A DNA stretch of 64,000 bases, from NCBI GenBank assembly GCA_019828565.1, contig JAHDYR010000016.1, positions 124,001 to 188,000 on the forward strand, written 5' to 3'. Of the stretch, positions 1,288 through 49,308 are shown piece by piece. Each line of letters begins with the position of its first letter. Within the stretch, counting starts at the first letter, position 1. Below the pieces are notes generated by a model. That model saw only the letters and a list, made by a program, of their open reading frames with translations, was not told where the DNA came from and did no database searches. A program made the translations under genes and the position numbers. This stretch comes from Carpediemonas membranifera BICM (lineage: Eukaryota > Protista > Fornicata).

Positions 1288-1947
1288 TCACTCACCACCA
1301 GCCAATGGCTTGCCCCCTCCCAGGAAGCGGGGTAGGGTCCCGAACAACATCTCCTTCAGCCCCTCTGCCGTGGGCCGCATGAGTCTGGTGTACAGGATGT
1401 ATATGGCCGAGAACGCGAAGAGGAAGAAGCAGACAAACACCAGCAGACGCTCTCGCACGTCGGCCCACCGCACTGCAGCCATAGCTTTCCGCCCCAGCCC
1501 CACTTCCTCGTGGACCATACTGTGCTGAGTGATCGTCGCCCTCATGACATCAGTGGACGCCACCAGAGAGCTCGCGGCACCGTCCTGCTCGGAGACGACC
1601 TCGTTGAGGATGTCGTTAGTGCTGTGCAGGATGGCTTCCAGTGGGTCATTGATCTGTGCACGGTGCCCACCCAAAAGACTCTCGCGGCCCTTGGTGAAGA
1701 GCTTCTTTTGCGCATTCTTGTATGCATGAACGTATTCCTCAGATAAAATATCAATCTTCTTTCTTTGCTCGTCCACAGGAAAGCCTATAGCCGCTTGCTT
1801 GTCCACATTATGCCGAATCTTTCGGATGGACCGCTGACACTGGCTAGCGGCAGATTGAAGCTCATTAACAGTTGCTGTTATTCTTATAAGCCCGATGCTT
1901 TTTTCTAGATTCTCAAGACTCGCCTTAATACTGTTTGCTGTGATCAT
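1288..1947 (-). CDS. SEC20: Sec20/BNIP1-like ER SNARE
   Basis: Coiled-coil SNARE-like region, then GRKAMAAVRWADVRERLLVFVCFFLFAFSAIYILYTRL (Sec20-type C-terminal TM); first ATG at 1947. Confidence 0.7.
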   Translation of the reverse strand: MITANSIKASLENLEKSIGLIRITATVNELQSAASQCQRSIRKIRHNVDKQAAIGFPVDEQRKKIDILSEEYVHAYKNAQKKLFTKGRESLLGGHRAQINDPLEAILHSTNDILNEVVSEQDGAASSLVASTDVMRATITQHSMVHEEVGLGRKAMAAVRWADVRERLLVFVCFFLFAFSAIYILYTRLMRPTAEGLKEMLFGTLPRFLGGGKPLAGGE

Positions 1948-1960
1948 CGTTGTGCCGCAG

Positions 1961-2096
1961 GATAAGAATACTTGAGTCCAAAACACACAGTGATCCGAGC
2001 AGCATCAGGATCGCAGTGTGGTTCATCATACTCTATCAATCGTGCGCAGCATATCACGCGCCGCTGCAGCGCGTGCTTGCTCAACTTAGCTAGTTA
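1961..2096 (-). ncRNA. Putative Fanzor omegaRNA scaffold (locus A)
   Basis: Directly 3' of the Fanzor ORF: small hairpin 2082-2096; CACGCGC/GCGCGTG hairpin with AGCA/TGCT base 2048-2081; long interrupted hairpin 1961-2037 (GATA-GAGTAT/GTATTC-TATC, CACAC/GTGTG, GATCC/GGATC). Confidence 0.6.
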
Positions 2097-3037
2097 ATGA
2101 TAGTGAGGAAGAGCACCTCTCTGGGAGTCGTAGTGGAAAGGAGATTGCTCTATCTGATCTGAAGTTGCATCGTAGGTGCACCAAAGGATGTTCTCGCTGG
2201 CGCTCATATCTCGGTGAGAGAGATTGAGAAGTATGTCTCTCTCTGCTCGGGATGCCGACGTAGCCGTTCAACGCGCCATGGAGCTCCCTCGCACGCGTGA
2301 TTCTGGCAGAGCATGGTGCGGTGTGTGTGCACCACACGTCTGAAGTGTGCTTTGCAGTAAGAAATTCGGAGACCATGTGCGCACTCACGACGACGTTGTG
2401 CCGGAGCATGATGCCAGGGAGAGCTCGAGCAAAGTGGCGGTACGGAGCACAGGACGGAGTGCCGGCGGAACCGAACAGTGCAGCCCCATACGCGACTTCG
2501 AGGTGAATGGGCTCCGGGGGGCACCCGCCGAGATCATCCAGGAGTTGACGTCCAGCCCGGGCGAAGTGTTTCAGGCGCAGACAGTGATTGGCAAAAGTCG
2601 CACGGCGGAAACACTTTCTCGTCCCCTCGTTGATGATCTGAACGATGTTCTCATGGACAAACCTAATCGACTGTTTGAGAGCCTCTAGACTTGTCGTTTT
2701 GAACGATGCTGCGCTCATATTCACGCGGAAAGTGGGGGTGGCAGTGTAGCCACACTTAGCGAGTACGCCAGATAGATACACTCTGCCCGTCTGGGCGGAG
2801 GATCGTGTAGCCGCCCAGCGACCGAGCACCAGGGTCGAAGCCCATGAGAGCTTGAATGTCCGGGGCAGGAGTAGCTTCGGCGTCATCCTGACCGAGCCGA
2901 GCCCGCTTGTTGCTGCTACCCTTTTTGTACGTGGGCCGGTCAGCCACCCGACCGCCACGGTATTTCTCGCGACCCACCCAAACCGTCACAGCAACAGAGA
3001 CCCCGTCAGTCTTCACAGAGAGCACTGCATCGATCAT
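2094..3037 (-). pseudogene. Fanzor1 (TnpB-like RuvC RNA-guided nuclease) pseudogene, 5'-truncated, three frameshifts (locus A)
   Basis: Motifs in order across frames: KTDGVSVAV; GFDPGARSL (RuvC-I D 2834-2836); SFKTTSL; RRATF; VAYGAALFG...APYRHFARAL; VSEFLT (RuvC-II E 2365-2367); CQNHAC zinc finger; LNLSHRDMSASENIL (RuvC-III D 2208-2210); TAA 2094-2096. Confidence 0.85.
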
Positions 3038-3155
3038 TTCTTTTCAGGGTTCATCAGCTAGCAGCATCCCTCAAAACACAAGAAACCAGCAGCATACAAC
3101 ACAAAGCGTCTTTACTACTAGCTACAACCGCTTTCGACCACTAGTGTCTCTCACA

Positions 3156-3347
3156 ACAGACTAAGATGACGAAGACGACGACGACATGAGCTTCAGACGC
3201 CGGCAATGGACGACAGATGAGCGCGTAACAGACGAGCACAGATGCGAAAGAAGACAGCAGCGTTCGACACAGACGATGGACGACAGACGACGCATCTTTT
3301 CGTGCAGACCGACGACTGAAAGCACGAAAGCCCGATTGTACAGACGA
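3156..3347. repeat. Cluster of ACAGA(C/T)G motifs upstream of Fanzor A
   Basis: ACAGAYG at 3213, 3228, 3238, 3269, 3283, 3340; ATGGACGACAGA at 3206 and 3276. Confidence 0.55.
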
Positions 3348-3542
3348 GGGCTGAAGTGGGTGAGTGGAGGTAGTGTGCCGCGCAGGATTAGAATTGTTGA
3401 GTCTAAACCCCCAGTAAACATCTCTAAACGCTACAGCCGTCCTGACATAAACTGCGAAACCGCCCAGATCGTGTCAGATGAGCGTATATGTACCGTATAT
3501 CGTCATGAATCGTTGTTTTTACTCAGGGAATAGTCGTCGCCG

Positions 3543-4232
3543 TCACCCGGCCCCCAGCAGACCATCCAGCTCCGGGCAGAGCAAGGTCTTGATGCTTTCC
3601 AGCGTGCCCCTGTCATCCTCGTCCATCGTCCCCAGCAGATGCCGCAGCAGCGCCCCAACCCTGCCGGTGTCCACGACCACCTTGTACCGCTGGGGGCCCG
3701 TCTTGACCCGGCCGGACCGCTGCACCTTGAGGACGGGGGATGTGGGGTGAGACTTGCCTCTCGTGCCCTTCTGTGCCGTATCCTTTGTCGCTTCCTCGAC
3801 TATGGCCTTCCACTCGTCCGAGCTGAGCAGCCAGAACGTCGACTGGATCGACGGGGGTTCCCCGGCAAGCTTCAGCATGCTAGAGAGCTCGAGGTCCTTG
3901 CTGAGGTTCTTCCGCTCGGCCTTGGTCAGCATACCGGTCCCTAACTCTTCAGCAACGGCCTTGGCGACGGTTCTCTCAACTTTGTCCAGCTCCAACAACC
4001 GGGGCTTCCTGACTGAAGCATCTTTGGACCTAGAAGACTTCGGAGTATCTCTAGATGGCATTCCAGCCTTGTCTAATAGGCTTGATTTCTTGCTGATATC
4101 CTTCTTTCTCGAGCTTTCCTTTAGTGAGGCTTGCTTGGCCTCGTCCCTCTCTTGTTTCAGCACAGTATCCGCCATATTAGCAACAAGAAGATATCTCACT
4201 AAGTTTCTGGCTGATACACGCTCGTCAGTCAT
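3543..4232 (-). CDS. Hypothetical protein, Lys/Ser-rich
   Basis: ~229-codon ORF from ATG 4232; no recognised motif. Confidence 0.55.
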   Translation of the reverse strand: MTDERVSARNLVRYLLVANMADTVLKQERDEAKQASLKESSRKKDISKKSSLLDKAGMPSRDTPKSSRSKDASVRKPRLLELDKVERTVAKAVAEELGTGMLTKAERKNLSKDLELSSMLKLAGEPPSIQSTFWLLSSDEWKAIVEEATKDTAQKGTRGKSHPTSPVLKVQRSGRVKTGPQRYKVVVDTGRVGALLRHLLGTMDEDDRGTLESIKTLLCPELDGLLGAG

Positions 4233-34078: not shown

Positions 34079-37000
34079 CTATGTAATCCAGGGAGCGACT
34101 CTGATTTCAGAGAACTCCAGATGAGGGTGGCTGAGCAACATGGGAACGACCTTCTGGAAGAAGTACTCGCGCCGGAATAAGAAGCTGCCAGCCGCGCCGA
34201 CTCGGGCAAAGTCTTCCGGAGTGCCGGAGATATCGAGGGCAGACTCCTCGAGCCGGTGCTGGGCGGCTTGTATGTCCAAAAAGTTGACTCTGCTACAGTC
34301 GAGCATGACGCCGATGTAGTGGTACGCCGCGCTGTTCTCCGGCAGGACGAGTCGACTGAGGAGCCAGTTGGTCGAGCGGTTTGCGGCGGTGTAGCCCACG
34401 ACATGGATGCTCCAGTCCTTGTTGAGCAGCTCGCGGTCCATAGCCTGGGCGATCACGGCGTAGTCATAGTCGCTGAAGCCGAGCATCTTGGTGATCTTCT
34501 CCATGGTGTCTGCCTTGGCGCATGACCCGCCCATGACCATCATCGCGGGGATGTCGGTGATCTGAGGAGTGCGGGGGCCGAGGAAGTAGTCGATGTCGCC
34601 GTCCTTCATGATGCGGCGGATGTTGCCGGCTTCGCGGTGGTGGAAGGGCACCTGCCGGGGCAGGGCGCTGAAGGGGACGACGGCTGCTTGGTTGGGCCGG
34701 CCGGTGAGCTTGCCGCGGGAGGGGTCGTTGACGAAGTCGGGGTGGAAGTAGGTCATCTCGGGGACGCCAGCGAGGGCGGCGTCTGCGGCCTCGACGCCCT
34801 GCATGAAGAGGTGGTCGATGTTGGCGACCTCGTTCTTCCAGCCGCCGAGCCTGCCGCGCGATAGGATATCATGCTCGCGAAGCCACGATTGAACGTCGCC
34901 AAGCACCTCAGCCACGCCGATCTCATTAGCAGGTACACACGTCTCGTGGTACTGGACCGAGACGACCTCGGACGACTGGGCGATGAAACCGGTCTGTCGG
35001 AGATAATCAGTGACCCGGTCGACCACCTCAGCCTGTGTCACGTTGCTGTCTGGGCTATCGAGATCTACCCGCAGACTATAATGGCCGCTAGGTGCCATTC
35101 CCTGGGCGTAGTTGCTGAGGACGGCTACCCTGCGCACCAGAGCGTCGTCGTGGACGCCGAACCAGTGCGCCTGCCACAGTTCGGAGGGAGCACGCCCTTG
35201 ACACCGATGCCGACGGTGTGGGCAGTGGCGCAGGTCAGTTGCTGGGCGTAGGCGTTGAAGCGGCGGACGATGGGCTCGGGCGTGTGCGGGCAGGCGGCGA
35301 CGAGCTTGAGCAGGTCGGGCAGGGGCATCGTGCTGACGAGCTTGCTGTAGGGGCGCGTGACGGTCTCCCGCGCGTGGCGGATGGTGACCTTGCGGTTGAT
35401 CGGGTCGACCGCGACGATCTCGTTGGAATACGAGATGCCGGACTGCTGGTCGGCCGCGAGCCGGGCGAAGAGCTCGCCGCTGCCGCCGATGTGCGGGTAG
35501 ACGAAGGTCCGGCTGACGTTGGTCTGCTGCGTGACCCACTCGAGCGACGACGGGACGGCTGCGGTCTCGAAGTCGACTGCGGTGTCGATGCTGCCGTTGA
35601 TGAGCCAGGCGACGCGCGTGTGGCGGTTCTGGTCGTGCTCGAGCACAGACGTGAGCAGCCCGTCGAAGTACGCGTAGTGCGACGTCAGCTCGAGGGGCCC
35701 GAAGTCCCACTCGAAGCCGTGCACGTCCTTGTGCGTCGCAGCGATGCCGCCCACGCGGTAGGTTGCCTCGTACACCTGGTAGTTGTCGAACCCGAGCTCC
35801 TGCAGCCGGTGCGCTGCCCCGAGACCCGTCGGGCCAGCCCCAAGGACGACGACCGGTGCGTACATGTAGGGGCCGACCTTGCCTGTCTCCCACACCCGCC
35901 GTGTCTTTTCAACGTTGCCAGAGACTTCGCCGACTTCAGAGAACGTGCCGACAGTGCCGACGATGTCGCCGAAGATGGGCTCAATCGTGGCCAGACTGTC
36001 GACCGTGGGGGGAATAGCAGGCACGGCGGAGGTCAGGTAGGCGAGCTGTTCGATGTTCACACGGCGGAAGAACTCCTTCTTCTTGGCCTTGGTGGCCTCA
36101 TCGACGACCTTGACGCTCTGGGACCCGCCGTTGAGGTGGGCGACTGGGGTCGAGTCGATAACGCCATACCGTCCCATGCCGTCCCGGTAGCCGTCCCTGG
36201 CGAACATGAAGTCGTAGTAGTAGCCGGTTGACAGGTCGAACTGGAAGTGCTTGTGGGTGACCCGGCTGTAAAAGGTGCGGGTGAACGCAGGGATCATGTC
36301 CTCGACGAACGTCACGAAGCGGCCCTCGTCGTTGTGGTCGGTCTGTCGCCCCGTGGCCTTGCTACCCCACCAGCCGGGGGAGTGCGTCATGCCCGGCTGG
36401 AACATCTGGAGGTTGTGCTTCTCAGCGATCCGGAGATACTCCATGGGGTCGAACAGCTCGGTGTCGGGGGTACCCGGCTCGGGGTTGAGGTCGATGTCGT
36501 CGTCCCACAGGAAGACGTAGTCGTACGCCTCGGCCACGGTGGGGGTGAGGAAGCGGGGGAAGTACCACCACTCGCCCTGCCGCTTGATGTCGACCCACGT
36601 GACCTCGCTGGCCCACGGGAGCTCGGACCAGTCGGAGTTGTCGTAGCGCATGAAGATGAAGTCGAACTGCTCGAGGCCGAAACGCGTGACGATCTTGTTG
36701 ATGAGGCGCTTACTATGGCCACCGACCGGAATGGACATGACACAGCGCTTGGGCCCGGGGTGGCTGCTGGCGTCGAGGGGGATGCCGGGCCACTCCCCGG
36801 CAGAGTCAGCGACGGGTCGGATGCGGGTTGGGGGCGGGTTGCGGATGTTGGGCCGGCCGGTGAGCTTGCCGCGGGAGGGGTCGTTGACGAAGTCGGGGTG
36901 GAAGTAGGTCATCTCGGGGACGCCAGCGAGGGCGGCGTCTGCGGCCTCGACGCCCTGCATGAAGAGGTGGTCGATGTTGGCGACCTCGTTCTTCCAGCCG

Positions 37001-38250
37001 CCGAGCCTGCCGCGCGATAGGATATCATGCTCGCGAAGCCACGATTGAACGTCGCCAAGCACCTCAGCCACGCCGATCTCATTAGCAGGTACACACGTCT
37101 CGTGGTACTGGACCGAGACGACCTCGGACGACTGGGCGATGAAACCGGTCTGTCGGAGATAATCAGTGACCCGGTCGACCACCTCAGCCTGTGTCACGTT
37201 GCTGTCTGGGCTATCGAGATCTACCCGCAGACTATAATGGCCGCTAGGTGCCATTCCCTGGGCGTAGTTGCTGAGGACGGCTACCCTGCGCACCAGAGCG
37301 TCGTCGTGGACGCCGAACCAGTGCGCCTGCCACAGTTCGGAGGGGAGCACGCCCTTGACACCGATGCCGACGGTGTGGGCAGTGGCGCAGGTCAGTTGCT
37401 GGGCGTAGGCGTTGAAGCGGCGGACGATGGGCTCGGGCGTGTGCGGGCAGGCGGCGACGAGCTTGAGCAGGTCGGGCAGGGGCATCGTGCTGACGAGCTT
37501 GCTGTAGGGGCGCGTGACGGTCTCCCGCGCGTGGCGGATGGTGACCTTGCGGTTGATCGGGTCGACCGCGACGATCTCGTTGGAATACGAGATGCCGGAC
37601 TGCTGGTCGGCCGCGAGCCGGGCGAAGAGCTCGCCGCTGCCGCCGATGTGCGGGTAGACGAAGGTCCGGCTGACGTTGGTCTGCTGCGTGACCCACTCGA
37701 GCGACGACGGGACGGCTGCGGTCTCGAAGTCGACTGCGGTGTCGATGCTGCCGTTGATGAGCCAGGCGACGCGCGTGTGGCGGTTCTGGTCGTGCTCGAG
37801 CACAGACGTGAGCAGCCCGTCGAAGTACGCGTAGTGCGACGTCAGCTCGAGGGGCCCGAAGTCCCACTCGAAGCCGTGCACGTCCTTGTGCGTCGCAGCG
37901 ATGCCGCCCACGCGGTAGGTTGCCTCGTACACCTGGTAGTTGTCGAACCCGAGCTCCTGCAGCCGGTGCGCTGCCCCGAGACCCGTCGGGCCAGCCCCAA
38001 GAATAATAACAGGCGAAGGCGCGCAGTTTCGTTGATGATCCGGCGATATCCCGTCTCCATGCGCTGAAATAGATCCATGTGCAGCATTTGTGCTCTCGGA
38101 GACAAATGACCTAACAACTAGACAGCAAACAGTGAACAGCGCAACAGTGACGAGGGCAAGCATCACGCGAACGAGATCCCTCTTAGATCTAGTCGCAAGA
38201 ATGATCATGCAACGTCGCTTCAGCCAATATAACGCCGCTGGCTTGTGCAT
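34079..38250 (-). CDS. Type II membrane protein: TM-[degenerate UDP-galactopyranose mutase + DUF707]x2; 1-nt frameshift at 35186-35188
   Basis: GAGPTGLGAAHRL..SHYAYFD and SRGRLGGWKNEVANIDHLFMQGVEA..HPDFVN (eukaryotic UGM); RFLTPTVAEAYDYVFLWDDDI (DUF707); adding one base joins ORFs 35125-38250 and 34079-35893. Confidence 0.8.
34691..35844. repeat. Internal duplication copy A (1154 bp)
   Basis: Appears identical to 36847-38001 except GGG vs GGGG. Confidence 0.92.
36847..38001. repeat. Internal duplication copy B (1155 bp)
   Basis: Direct repeat of 34691-35844, offset 2156/2157. Confidence 0.92.
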
Positions 38251-48634: not shown

Positions 48635-48797
48635 TCTGCTTTGTTATAAGGTCTTTGTCGGGGATTCGATCGTCGTGTCCAGTTTTTTCATGAAAAAATG
48701 TGTGAGCCTTAGAGCATGCAGACTGGCACGGAAAGAGCGCAGGCGATCTTTTCACACTAGTATAGTCGCCCATGCGAACATTTAGAATTCTTAATGG

Positions 48798-48891
48798 TGA
48801 AGTATCATAGAGTGCACAGTGCAAGCACTGCGTCTCTCCACTTCAATTAGCTTGCCCGGAGGCGAAGACTAGCGGCTGGTTAGCCGTAATT
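48798..48891 (-). ncRNA. Putative Fanzor omegaRNA scaffold (locus B)
   Basis: Hairpins CGGCT/AGCCG 48873-48886; TAG-CTT-GCC/GGC-AAG-CTA 48848-48871; long TGAAGTG..AGAG..CAGTGC/GCACTG..CTCT..TACTTCA 48798-48845. Confidence 0.6.
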
Positions 48892-48928
48892 GGTTATAGT
48901 TGATGGTTATAGTTGATGGTTATAGTTG
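48891..48928. repeat. 13-bp tandem repeat TGGTTATAGTTGA x~2.9
   Basis: Units start at 48891, 48904 and 48917. Confidence 0.9.
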
Positions 48929-49308
48929 GGAAGACGGGCTGGAGGTCTTGGATTTCTGAAAGCACTGGCTTGATACTGTGCATCCGTCATGAGGCCGCAA
49001 TCCAAGATGTTCTGTGCAGCAGTCTTGTCTCTGTGGGAGAGATTGAGCCAAGTGGTGGTAGGATCGGAATTGAGGCGTTGCTGTCTGTACCATGGAGCAC
49101 CTTGACAATTCGGGTTGTGGCATCGCATCGTGCGCCTCGTGTAGCGAGTTCTACGGAACCTCGCGCGGCAGAAGGGGCAGACGAGTGAGATACTGCAGTC
49201 TTCCGATACTGATTTATAAACTGCACAATGACTCAGGGGTGCAGGGCAAATATGACCCAATTGGTCCCCACAGCTACCTCCTCTCCCGGTGGTTGATGCA
49301 GTTTGCAT
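48907..49308 (-). pseudogene. Fanzor1/TnpB-like C-terminal remnant (locus B)
   Basis: VSED (RuvC-II E 49201-49203), CPFC..CHNPNC zinc finger, LNLSHRDKTAAQNIL (RuvC-III D 49027-49029); no RuvC-I found upstream. Confidence 0.82.

Follow-up and report, generated by a model that had tools for sequence, protein, structure and literature searches.

A decayed copy of a probable Fanzor1-type nuclease element between a promoter-like motif and the Sec20 start codon of Carpediemonas membranifera

The window, the whole stretch of 64,000 nucleotides analysed here (C17:124001-188000), comes from the genome of Carpediemonas membranifera (24.2 Mb, 69 contigs). On its minus strand we identified a 1.48-kb insertion (3435-1951; C17:125951-127435), an internally deleted copy with three frameshifts of a 2.44-kb element, which is a transposon of a free-living protist. 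The insertion places 1.48 kb between the ATG of the host Sec20 gene and a promoter-like motif (Table 1). The first-pass annotation had given the locus an extent of 1961-3037, which misses the element ends. The four minus-strand frame segments with ordered motifs that it described were seen in a six-frame translation (minus strand, 1500-4200), and the codons of the three acidic RuvC residues that it reported as kept were located (D 2836-2834, in DPG; E 2367-2365; D 2210-2208).

Table 1. Features of the insertion and its flanks, in window coordinates.
Feature	Position	Strand	Basis or remark
Host target motif GCAGTTTATG, promoter-like	3446-3455	-	20 bp before the insertion point; at -20 to -11 in 21 reconstructed empty sites
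Left target-site duplication ACGGC	3436-3440	-	3/5 bases agree with the right duplication in the window copy
Left terminus, 11-mer starting with TG; allele TGTAGCGTTTA (most copies: TGTGGTATTTA)	3425-3435	-	Sequence
Putative RLE-type non-LTR retrotransposon tail of type S2 (3' end, 17 nt)	3408-3424	+ (opposite Fanzor)	Flanking TTTA duplication; nested tails elsewhere
Left direct repeat, TTTA plus 30-bp core	3374-3407	-	Repeat comparison
Purine-rich tract adjoining the left repeat; resembles a PPT on the non-Fanzor strand	3353-3373	+	Sequence; similar tracts precede Ty3 LTRs in L039 and L045
5' untranslated part of the element; the deletion fuses an upstream ATG at 3037 in frame	3027-3352	-	Translation, family alignment
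C-terminal half of the probable Fanzor (late WED strands, RuvC I-III, zinc finger), with +4, -19 and +2 indels	2094-3026	-	Translation, family alignment
Candidate omegaRNA scaffold, made up of a long stem that closes 2 nt short of the element end and two short hairpins	1951-2098	-	Fold prediction
Right direct repeat, ends CACA, with a 2-nt deletion in the window copy; 3' arm of the scaffold stem	1951-1989	-	Sequence
Right target-site duplication ACGAT; start of the would-be guide	1946-1950	-	Empty-site reconstruction
Host Sec20 gene	1288-1947	-	Pfam PF03908, E 4e-7; ATG 3 bp behind the element end

Compared with the family majority sequence, the window copy has a 973-bp deletion at 3027/3026, a 4-bp insertion at about 2779, a 19-bp deletion at about 2363-2357 and a 2-bp insertion at about 2245 in an AG run. 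The large deletion removed the start codon and about 318 N-terminal codons, in agreement with the N-terminal part noted earlier as missing, and the 19-bp deletion accounts for the reported loss of the first zinc-finger Cys; the DPG is present. The 973-bp deletion is common to three loci (L001-L003), and as L002 and L003 carry it at other sites, the deleted form must have moved. The earlier statement that the breaks reflect real decay and not read error holds for this deletion, since it is found in three loci, and for the +4 and -19 changes, which are unlike homopolymer errors, but is less certain for the +2 change, which lies in a microsatellite and is possibly a long-read error. As read, the window copy cannot make an active nuclease. 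At L002 (1864-2826, plus strand), the deletion fuses an upstream ATG in frame and leaves an unbroken 319-aa RuvC-only ORF, annotated as J8273_4368.

That the locus is a decayed, transposon-borne copy, as first suggested, was borne out by a multicopy family, defined ends, the shared deletion and the indels. The window locus gave 58 DNA matches in its own genome, most at 90-95% identity, and 159 protein matches, including a second family at about 52%. Pattern searches found 87 left and 92 right element ends genome-wide compared to none in controls, and 210 end-repeat sites compared to none in the control; about 30 of these sites, judged from coordinates, are neither left nor right ends and may be solo repeats. 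We put the family (family A) at roughly 90 copies in C. membranifera. Its majority sequence, built from 30 copies, is 2442 bp long with one 632-codon ORF, and the median pairwise divergence among copies is 2.4%. A genome search for intact copies showed an unbroken start-to-stop ORF in one of 16 near-full copies, L009 (634 aa), which is annotated as a 642-aa hypothetical protein, and near-identical proteins are annotated to C. membranifera. KAG9394045.1 contains a family-A Fanzor fragment annotated as cytosine deaminase, probably through a gene-model fusion with the downstream host gene.

Coding variants shared by at least three copies had a pN/pS of about 0.5 (40/98 synonymous, binomial p 4e-4), which suggests that propagating lineages are under some purifying selection. 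Private variants had a pN/pS of 0.7-0.8, with p 0.1 for the difference between shared and private variants. The copies are strongly mosaic, with r2 dropping to 0.05 beyond 30 bp, which could reflect real recombination or, in part, an artefact of short-read polishing. Microhomology of 2-9 bp, compared to 0.7 at random, was seen at many of the family's deletions, which agrees with the absence of NHEJ and the presence of alternative end joining in this host (PMC8516963). The deletion junctions of L014, L023, L025, L044 and L054 contain TAAGG-repeat filler, in three copies fused to its own reverse complement; the filler resembles telomere-type repeats added at a double-strand break within the element.

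Published Fanzors carry DPG at RuvC-I and a catalytic E six residues before the first CxxC and 120-160 residues after the DPG (PMC10711439). The unbroken L009 protein has D384-P-G, E539-x6-C546xxC549 at 152 residues after the DPG, and HRD597, and the fingerprints are retained in paralog families at 48-57% identity (HRD in three families), which supports the earlier claim of a Fanzor1-type nuclease. In L009, the RuvC-III Asp follows a four-Cys zinc finger whose second half reads C-x4-C, with 26 residues to the last Asp; due to this atypical spacing the published pro-Fanzor regular expression was not matched in full.

Searches of Pfam, NCBIfam and PDB sequences with the pieces and the unbroken copy gave no significant match, and no individual frame piece of the window copy matched Pfam or PDB. 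PF07282 was the top Pfam family, found for 5/12 members with a best E of 0.009, which is below the cut-off; the profile search that had been proposed as a check thus returned the TnpB-type family without a significant HMM match, and the refuting conditions named in the first-pass annotation were answered only in part. In the ESM Atlas the protein reached 0.97 to PF07282/DUF8286 clusters from green algae, giant viruses and Mucoromycota. The two AlphaFold models had a pLDDT of 40 and 31, too poor to judge whether D, E and D form one active site; the comparison with Fanzor structures, also proposed earlier, gave a Foldseek match to SpuFz at E 0.004. In this search of 350,542 chains with the pLDDT-40 model, six of the top seven hits were SpuFz, GtFz or PpFz and the seventh was Cas12f (E 0.004-0.05). 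VIA-align of the low-confidence model matched only a generic helical bundle, and the atlas fold search and domain model gave nothing informative on the nuclease fold. With phmmer (1.84 billion representatives) and word-index searches, the named matches were all from Carpediemonas except for one Copromyxa transcript, and scans of viral and metagenome contigs found no relative of the nuclease. The Copromyxa protea protein (EukProt EP01127), derived from a transcript, shares a 90% cluster with Carpediemonas family C and is probably a cross-contamination; if so, it hints that family C is transcribed.

Beyond the motifs, the ESM Atlas value and the weak Pfam and Foldseek matches give moderate support, and we consider it very probable that the protein is a Fanzor, that is, probably an RNA-guided nuclease related to CRISPR-Cas12. 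We favour the Fanzor1 label, on the basis of size and nearest structures rather than a tree. The lineage appears to have no detectable sequence relative outside C. membranifera.

Both ends of the element carry a 41-bp direct repeat consisting of a 30-bp core and 11 outer bases, and the outer 11 always differ between the ends. Comparison of copies and of reconstructed empty sites, along the lines suggested earlier, gave TG...CA termini and 5-bp duplications, perfect in 21/27 copies. The motif GCAnTTTA(T/A)G lies at -20 to -11 of 21 reconstructed empty sites, always to the left and in a single orientation, and a pattern based on it found 84 sites in the genome compared to 6 in the control. A same-strand ORF start is found within 150 nt behind 17/27 insertions compared to 32% at random (p 8e-4). 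The element is a non-autonomous one of 2.44 kb with a divergent Fanzor1-type nuclease as its sole gene, and its insertion sites have a promoter-like motif on one side and the start codon of a host gene on the other. No TAM was seen beside the empty site, as positions -10 to -1 carry at most 0.44 bit and the duplications are variable. No transposase gene lies inside the element and no helper for it was found. With respect to terminal inverted repeats, only the outer 4 bases are inverted, with none beyond 4 bp, and the 41-mer is a weak palindrome. L008 has the motif and a perfect duplication but lacks the TG terminus.

Three other readings of the ends were rejected: inverted end repeats, as the repeats proved direct; Replitron-like fuzzy ends, as the variable piece is anchored at the outer end; and tRNA-derived ends, as no tRNA was called. 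The left terminus resembles the start of the Ty3 LTR behind chromovirus pol in L039 and L045, with 10/11 bases in L039. In the left flanks of these two loci, Fanzor pieces lie just inside the 3' LTR of Ty3 chromoviruses, with integrase and chromodomain upstream. Among about 45 non-Fanzor sites with the motif and TGT, none was within 6 kb upstream of an RT match in a hand comparison with the best 150 of 1519 candidates, which gives no confirmation that Ty3 elements follow this target rule. The target motif was also found, with 15 identical matches, in repeated sequence that is probably an LTR. At C4:667016, C4:650155 and C8:827850, an identical target sequence is occupied and the tail lengths differ (47 vs about 196 nt). 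Full-length S (see below), the possible solo repeats and the Ty3 LTR flanks were assessed from coordinates alone. The carrier fits no described class.

The window holds further repeats of its own. At 48795-49224 (minus strand, locus B), we found the C-terminal 110 codons of a family C paralog (43-48% identity). This fragment lies 20 bp behind the same motif, and an ARP3-like ORF follows about 160 bp downstream; the right end of the fragment reads ...ACTTCA and has no 41-bp repeat. A 1155-bp direct duplication (99.9%) lies at 34691-38001, and a 136-bp inverted duplication (98.5%) at 17065-17200/22892-23027.

In the 150 nt behind the stop codon, two hairpins and a long stem are predicted, the latter closing 2 nt before the element end. 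The z value of this scaffold fold was -4.2 in the well-kept copy L020, -0.9 in the window copy and -3.1 in paralog family C, where the right end has the same three-stem layout in unrelated sequence. Rfam gave no match for the right-end scaffold. A fixed self-targeting guide was considered and rejected, as the right repeat belongs to the scaffold stem and breakpoints lie at the repeat start. Pieces of the family-C right end (omegaRNA-like) were observed at or near family-A junctions, some of them inverted (L010:2750-2871, L035:1279-1352, L052:277-341 and L017:140-204), and L052 is an in-frame chimera of the N-terminus of another family and a family-A C-terminus.

In most copies, a piece of foreign sequence (S) of about 10 to at least 466 nt separates the left 11-mer from the left repeat. 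The pieces always have the same starting base and stop at different positions, so that nearly every copy has its own length, and nearly all of the about 90 S pieces in the genome are cut off on the same side. Read in the opposite direction, S consists of the last part of an ORF and about 40 nt behind it; a D..D..K motif like that of endonucleases was recognised by eye in the ORF of the longest tail. The S protein gave no match in Pfam, in PDB or outside C. membranifera, reached 0.94 to unnamed clusters in the atlas, and matched two ORFs, of 1391 aa and 1505 aa, at 38%; the match in the 1505-aa ORF has an S-type terminus 300 bp away. By hand count, 46/68 S-type termini adjoin a family-A element or repeat and about 20 have no family-A element alongside, among them C4:111022, C8:827870, C54:356757 and C54:442621. 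At C8:147765-158207, the coordinates indicate a tandem array with a period of about 1.67 kb, containing a Fanzor fragment and a diverged S piece.

The S tails have the exact 3' end, nested 5' truncation and target duplication by which RLE insertions are recognised; TTTA is duplicated at the junctions and 0-9 bases are added. A second element (T) lies in the right repeat of L059, L023 and L048, with 5'-truncated pieces of about 58, 75 and 115 nt and duplications of 10-13 bp. Both kinds of tail therefore bear what look like marks of site-specific target-primed insertion by RLE elements. The window copy ends in a paralog of S (S2), and the three copies with the same 973-bp deletion bear three different tails, which indicates that tails were gained per insertion. 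Later arrival of the tails is also suggested by L015, where S1 is stacked on S2, by L059, where a 15-bp duplication includes host flank, and by S2 following at least three different terminal alleles, with the terminal 7-mer and the tail type uncoupled. One and the same tail junction occurs in L007 and L009, which lie at different sites, and the tail-less copies L006 and L029 keep the full 11-mer.

The window locus is a dead copy of an element that carries a probable Fanzor gene, and on balance we lean towards mobilisation of this element in trans, with the tails arriving later. Host promoters would drive the inserted element. The protein of the few unbroken copies very likely binds a right-end omegaRNA, with the host sequence behind the insertion as guide; as each insertion would take its guide from its host flank, dead copies could still supply guides. 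Insertion itself would be carried out in trans by an integrase-type DDE enzyme that recognises the TG...CA ends and is tethered by a motif-bound factor, a step that we regard as slightly favoured; a Ty3 integrase acting on non-canonically made cDNA and a cut-and-paste transposase are the candidate enzymes. It is fairly likely that the left-end tail is a secondary parasite, with S1 and S2 inserting by target-primed reverse transcription between TTTA and GA of the left terminus, and T in the right repeat. The nuclease would most likely serve as a homing enzyme that converts empty alleles, with a weak or displaced TAM. A homing nuclease normally needs a conserved sequence beside the protospacer, and it is in the homing step, for which no adjacent TAM was found, that the model is weakest.

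The tails also allow for S itself as the mover. The RLE retrotransposon would bind the motif, cut with a 5-bp stagger and prime on the 3' end of its own RNA, and the other end would prime on Fanzor RNA, or the enzyme would jump to that RNA, to leave two 5'-truncated cDNAs head to head; the Fanzor element would then spread via RNA as a passenger at host transcription starts, where the host promoter expresses nuclease and guide. Both partners are indeed fixed at their outer ends and truncated toward the middle, the orientation is strict, two thirds of the S-type termini (46/68) adjoin family A, the left-truncated L008 retains its duplication, L007 and L009 share a junction, and an S-type terminus adjoins the 1505-aa ORF; RLE enzymes are also known to jump between templates without homology (PMC6895275). 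However, terminal 7-mer and tail type are uncoupled, the tail-less copies have the full 11-mer, the stacking of tails and the duplication in L059 are consistent with a later insertion, the Fanzor-side junction is exact in most copies, and left and right ends are about equally common, which makes us regard S as mover as rather unlikely. The ends would also suit a miniature LTR retrotransposon of the canonical kind (TRIM-like), in which Fanzor would be cargo in antisense and Ty3 RT and integrase would do the copying, as such an element would have TG...CA ends, a 5-bp duplication, a PPT-like tract and direct repeats, and the possible solo repeat sites, the many Ty3 chromoviruses in the genome and the extreme mosaicism among copies point the same way. 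Canonical LTR copying is nevertheless improbable, because left and right repeats are identical in only 7/21 copies, the concordance of repeat alleles equals independence at two of three sites (0.52 vs 0.55; 0.57 vs 0.56), the outer 11 bases never match, and no TGG-type primer-binding site was seen at either inner edge of the repeats. Tails would also not be inherited by this route, and the mosaicism may partly be a polishing artefact.

In Tn7 and CAST systems, insertion occurs at a fixed distance and in one orientation, with a 5-bp duplication and TGT...ACA ends. The distance, orientation, duplication and ends found here recall these systems, and Fanzor itself could do the targeting, recognising the promoter motif and guiding an integrase to a point 10-15 bp further downstream, always in the same orientation. 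At its core the motif has an AT-rich TTTA, which resembles Fanzor1 TAMs, and the Ty3 elements among those listed do not show the target rule. All three catalytic residues are retained, however, no fixed guide matches the targets and no partner transposase is known, so that we consider Fanzor targeting very unlikely. Finally, the frameshifts could be assembly errors in a live window copy, or the protein could lie outside the TnpB family. The assembly was made from R9.4 long reads (PMC8516963), contigs of uncertain type did not confirm copy-specific alleles, and profile matches were not significant. Against this, the 973-bp deletion recurs in three loci, the -19 and +4 breaks are not error-like, and three independent weak searches all indicate Fanzor/Cas12f, which leaves this explanation hardly credible.

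We compared the preferred reading, a trans-mobilised Fanzor element, with known systems. With Fanzor1 (SpuFz1 on Spu-1, GtFz1 and PpFz1; PMC10432273, PMC11423790) it shares the single ORF of similar size, the DPG / E-x6-CxxC / RD triad, a structured right end that closes where the element ends, numerous partial copies and no internal transposase, but it differs in having no detectable sequence match, direct ends instead of 30-nt inverted repeats, no fixed TAM by the insertion, and the C-x4-C half finger with its 26 residues to the last Asp. A TRIM-like mini-LTR element moved by Ty3/gypsy would have the same termini, duplication, PPT-like tract, short direct repeats and promoter-proximal insertion, whereas here the repeats do not come from one template, the outer bases differ, no primer-binding site was seen and one orientation is kept. 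The S and T tails resemble site-specific RLE non-LTR elements (CRE/R2/NeSL; PMC4640811, PMC6895275) in that their 3' end is exact and their 5' truncation variable, with a short duplication, additional bases at the junction and tandem stacking. Transposons are a known target class of these retrotransposons (PMC4640811, PMC6895275), but here the target is the Fanzor end repeat, the occupancy is very high and the RT of S was not seen. Replitrons (PMC10288648) also have short direct terminal repeats, orientation-specific insertion and variable sequence at one end; their fuzzy ends, however, are the parent's flank anchored at the element, whereas the variable piece found here derives from a single foreign sequence and has its fixed point at the outer end, and our element has no HUH Rep gene and a fixed 5-bp duplication. 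The Fanzor carriers on record are DNA transposons, and a 2026 review reports no evidence that any retrotransposon encodes a Fanzor (PMC13565253); a Ty3 next to SpuFz1 was interpreted as a nested insertion (PMC10432273), and a Fanzor-LINE association was based on proximity (PMC10530073). In the literature we found no paper linking Carpediemonas with Fanzor or TnpB. Taken as a whole, the element appears to work like a Fanzor1 OMEGA element that has the protein fingerprints and lacks the adjacent TAM, the terminal inverted repeats and the identical LTRs.

The window gene alone is one more dead Fanzor copy, and the value of the family lies in a lineage without a recognisable sequence relative beyond its species, in an unbroken copy with a defined right end that can be tested directly, and in the unusual carrier. 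The tails can be mistaken for part of the Fanzor element. Knowing the mover and the TAM would test whether a Fanzor helps an element that does not excise. The locus presents parasitism at three levels, in which a host promoter, a Fanzor element and a site-specific retrotransposon are stacked.
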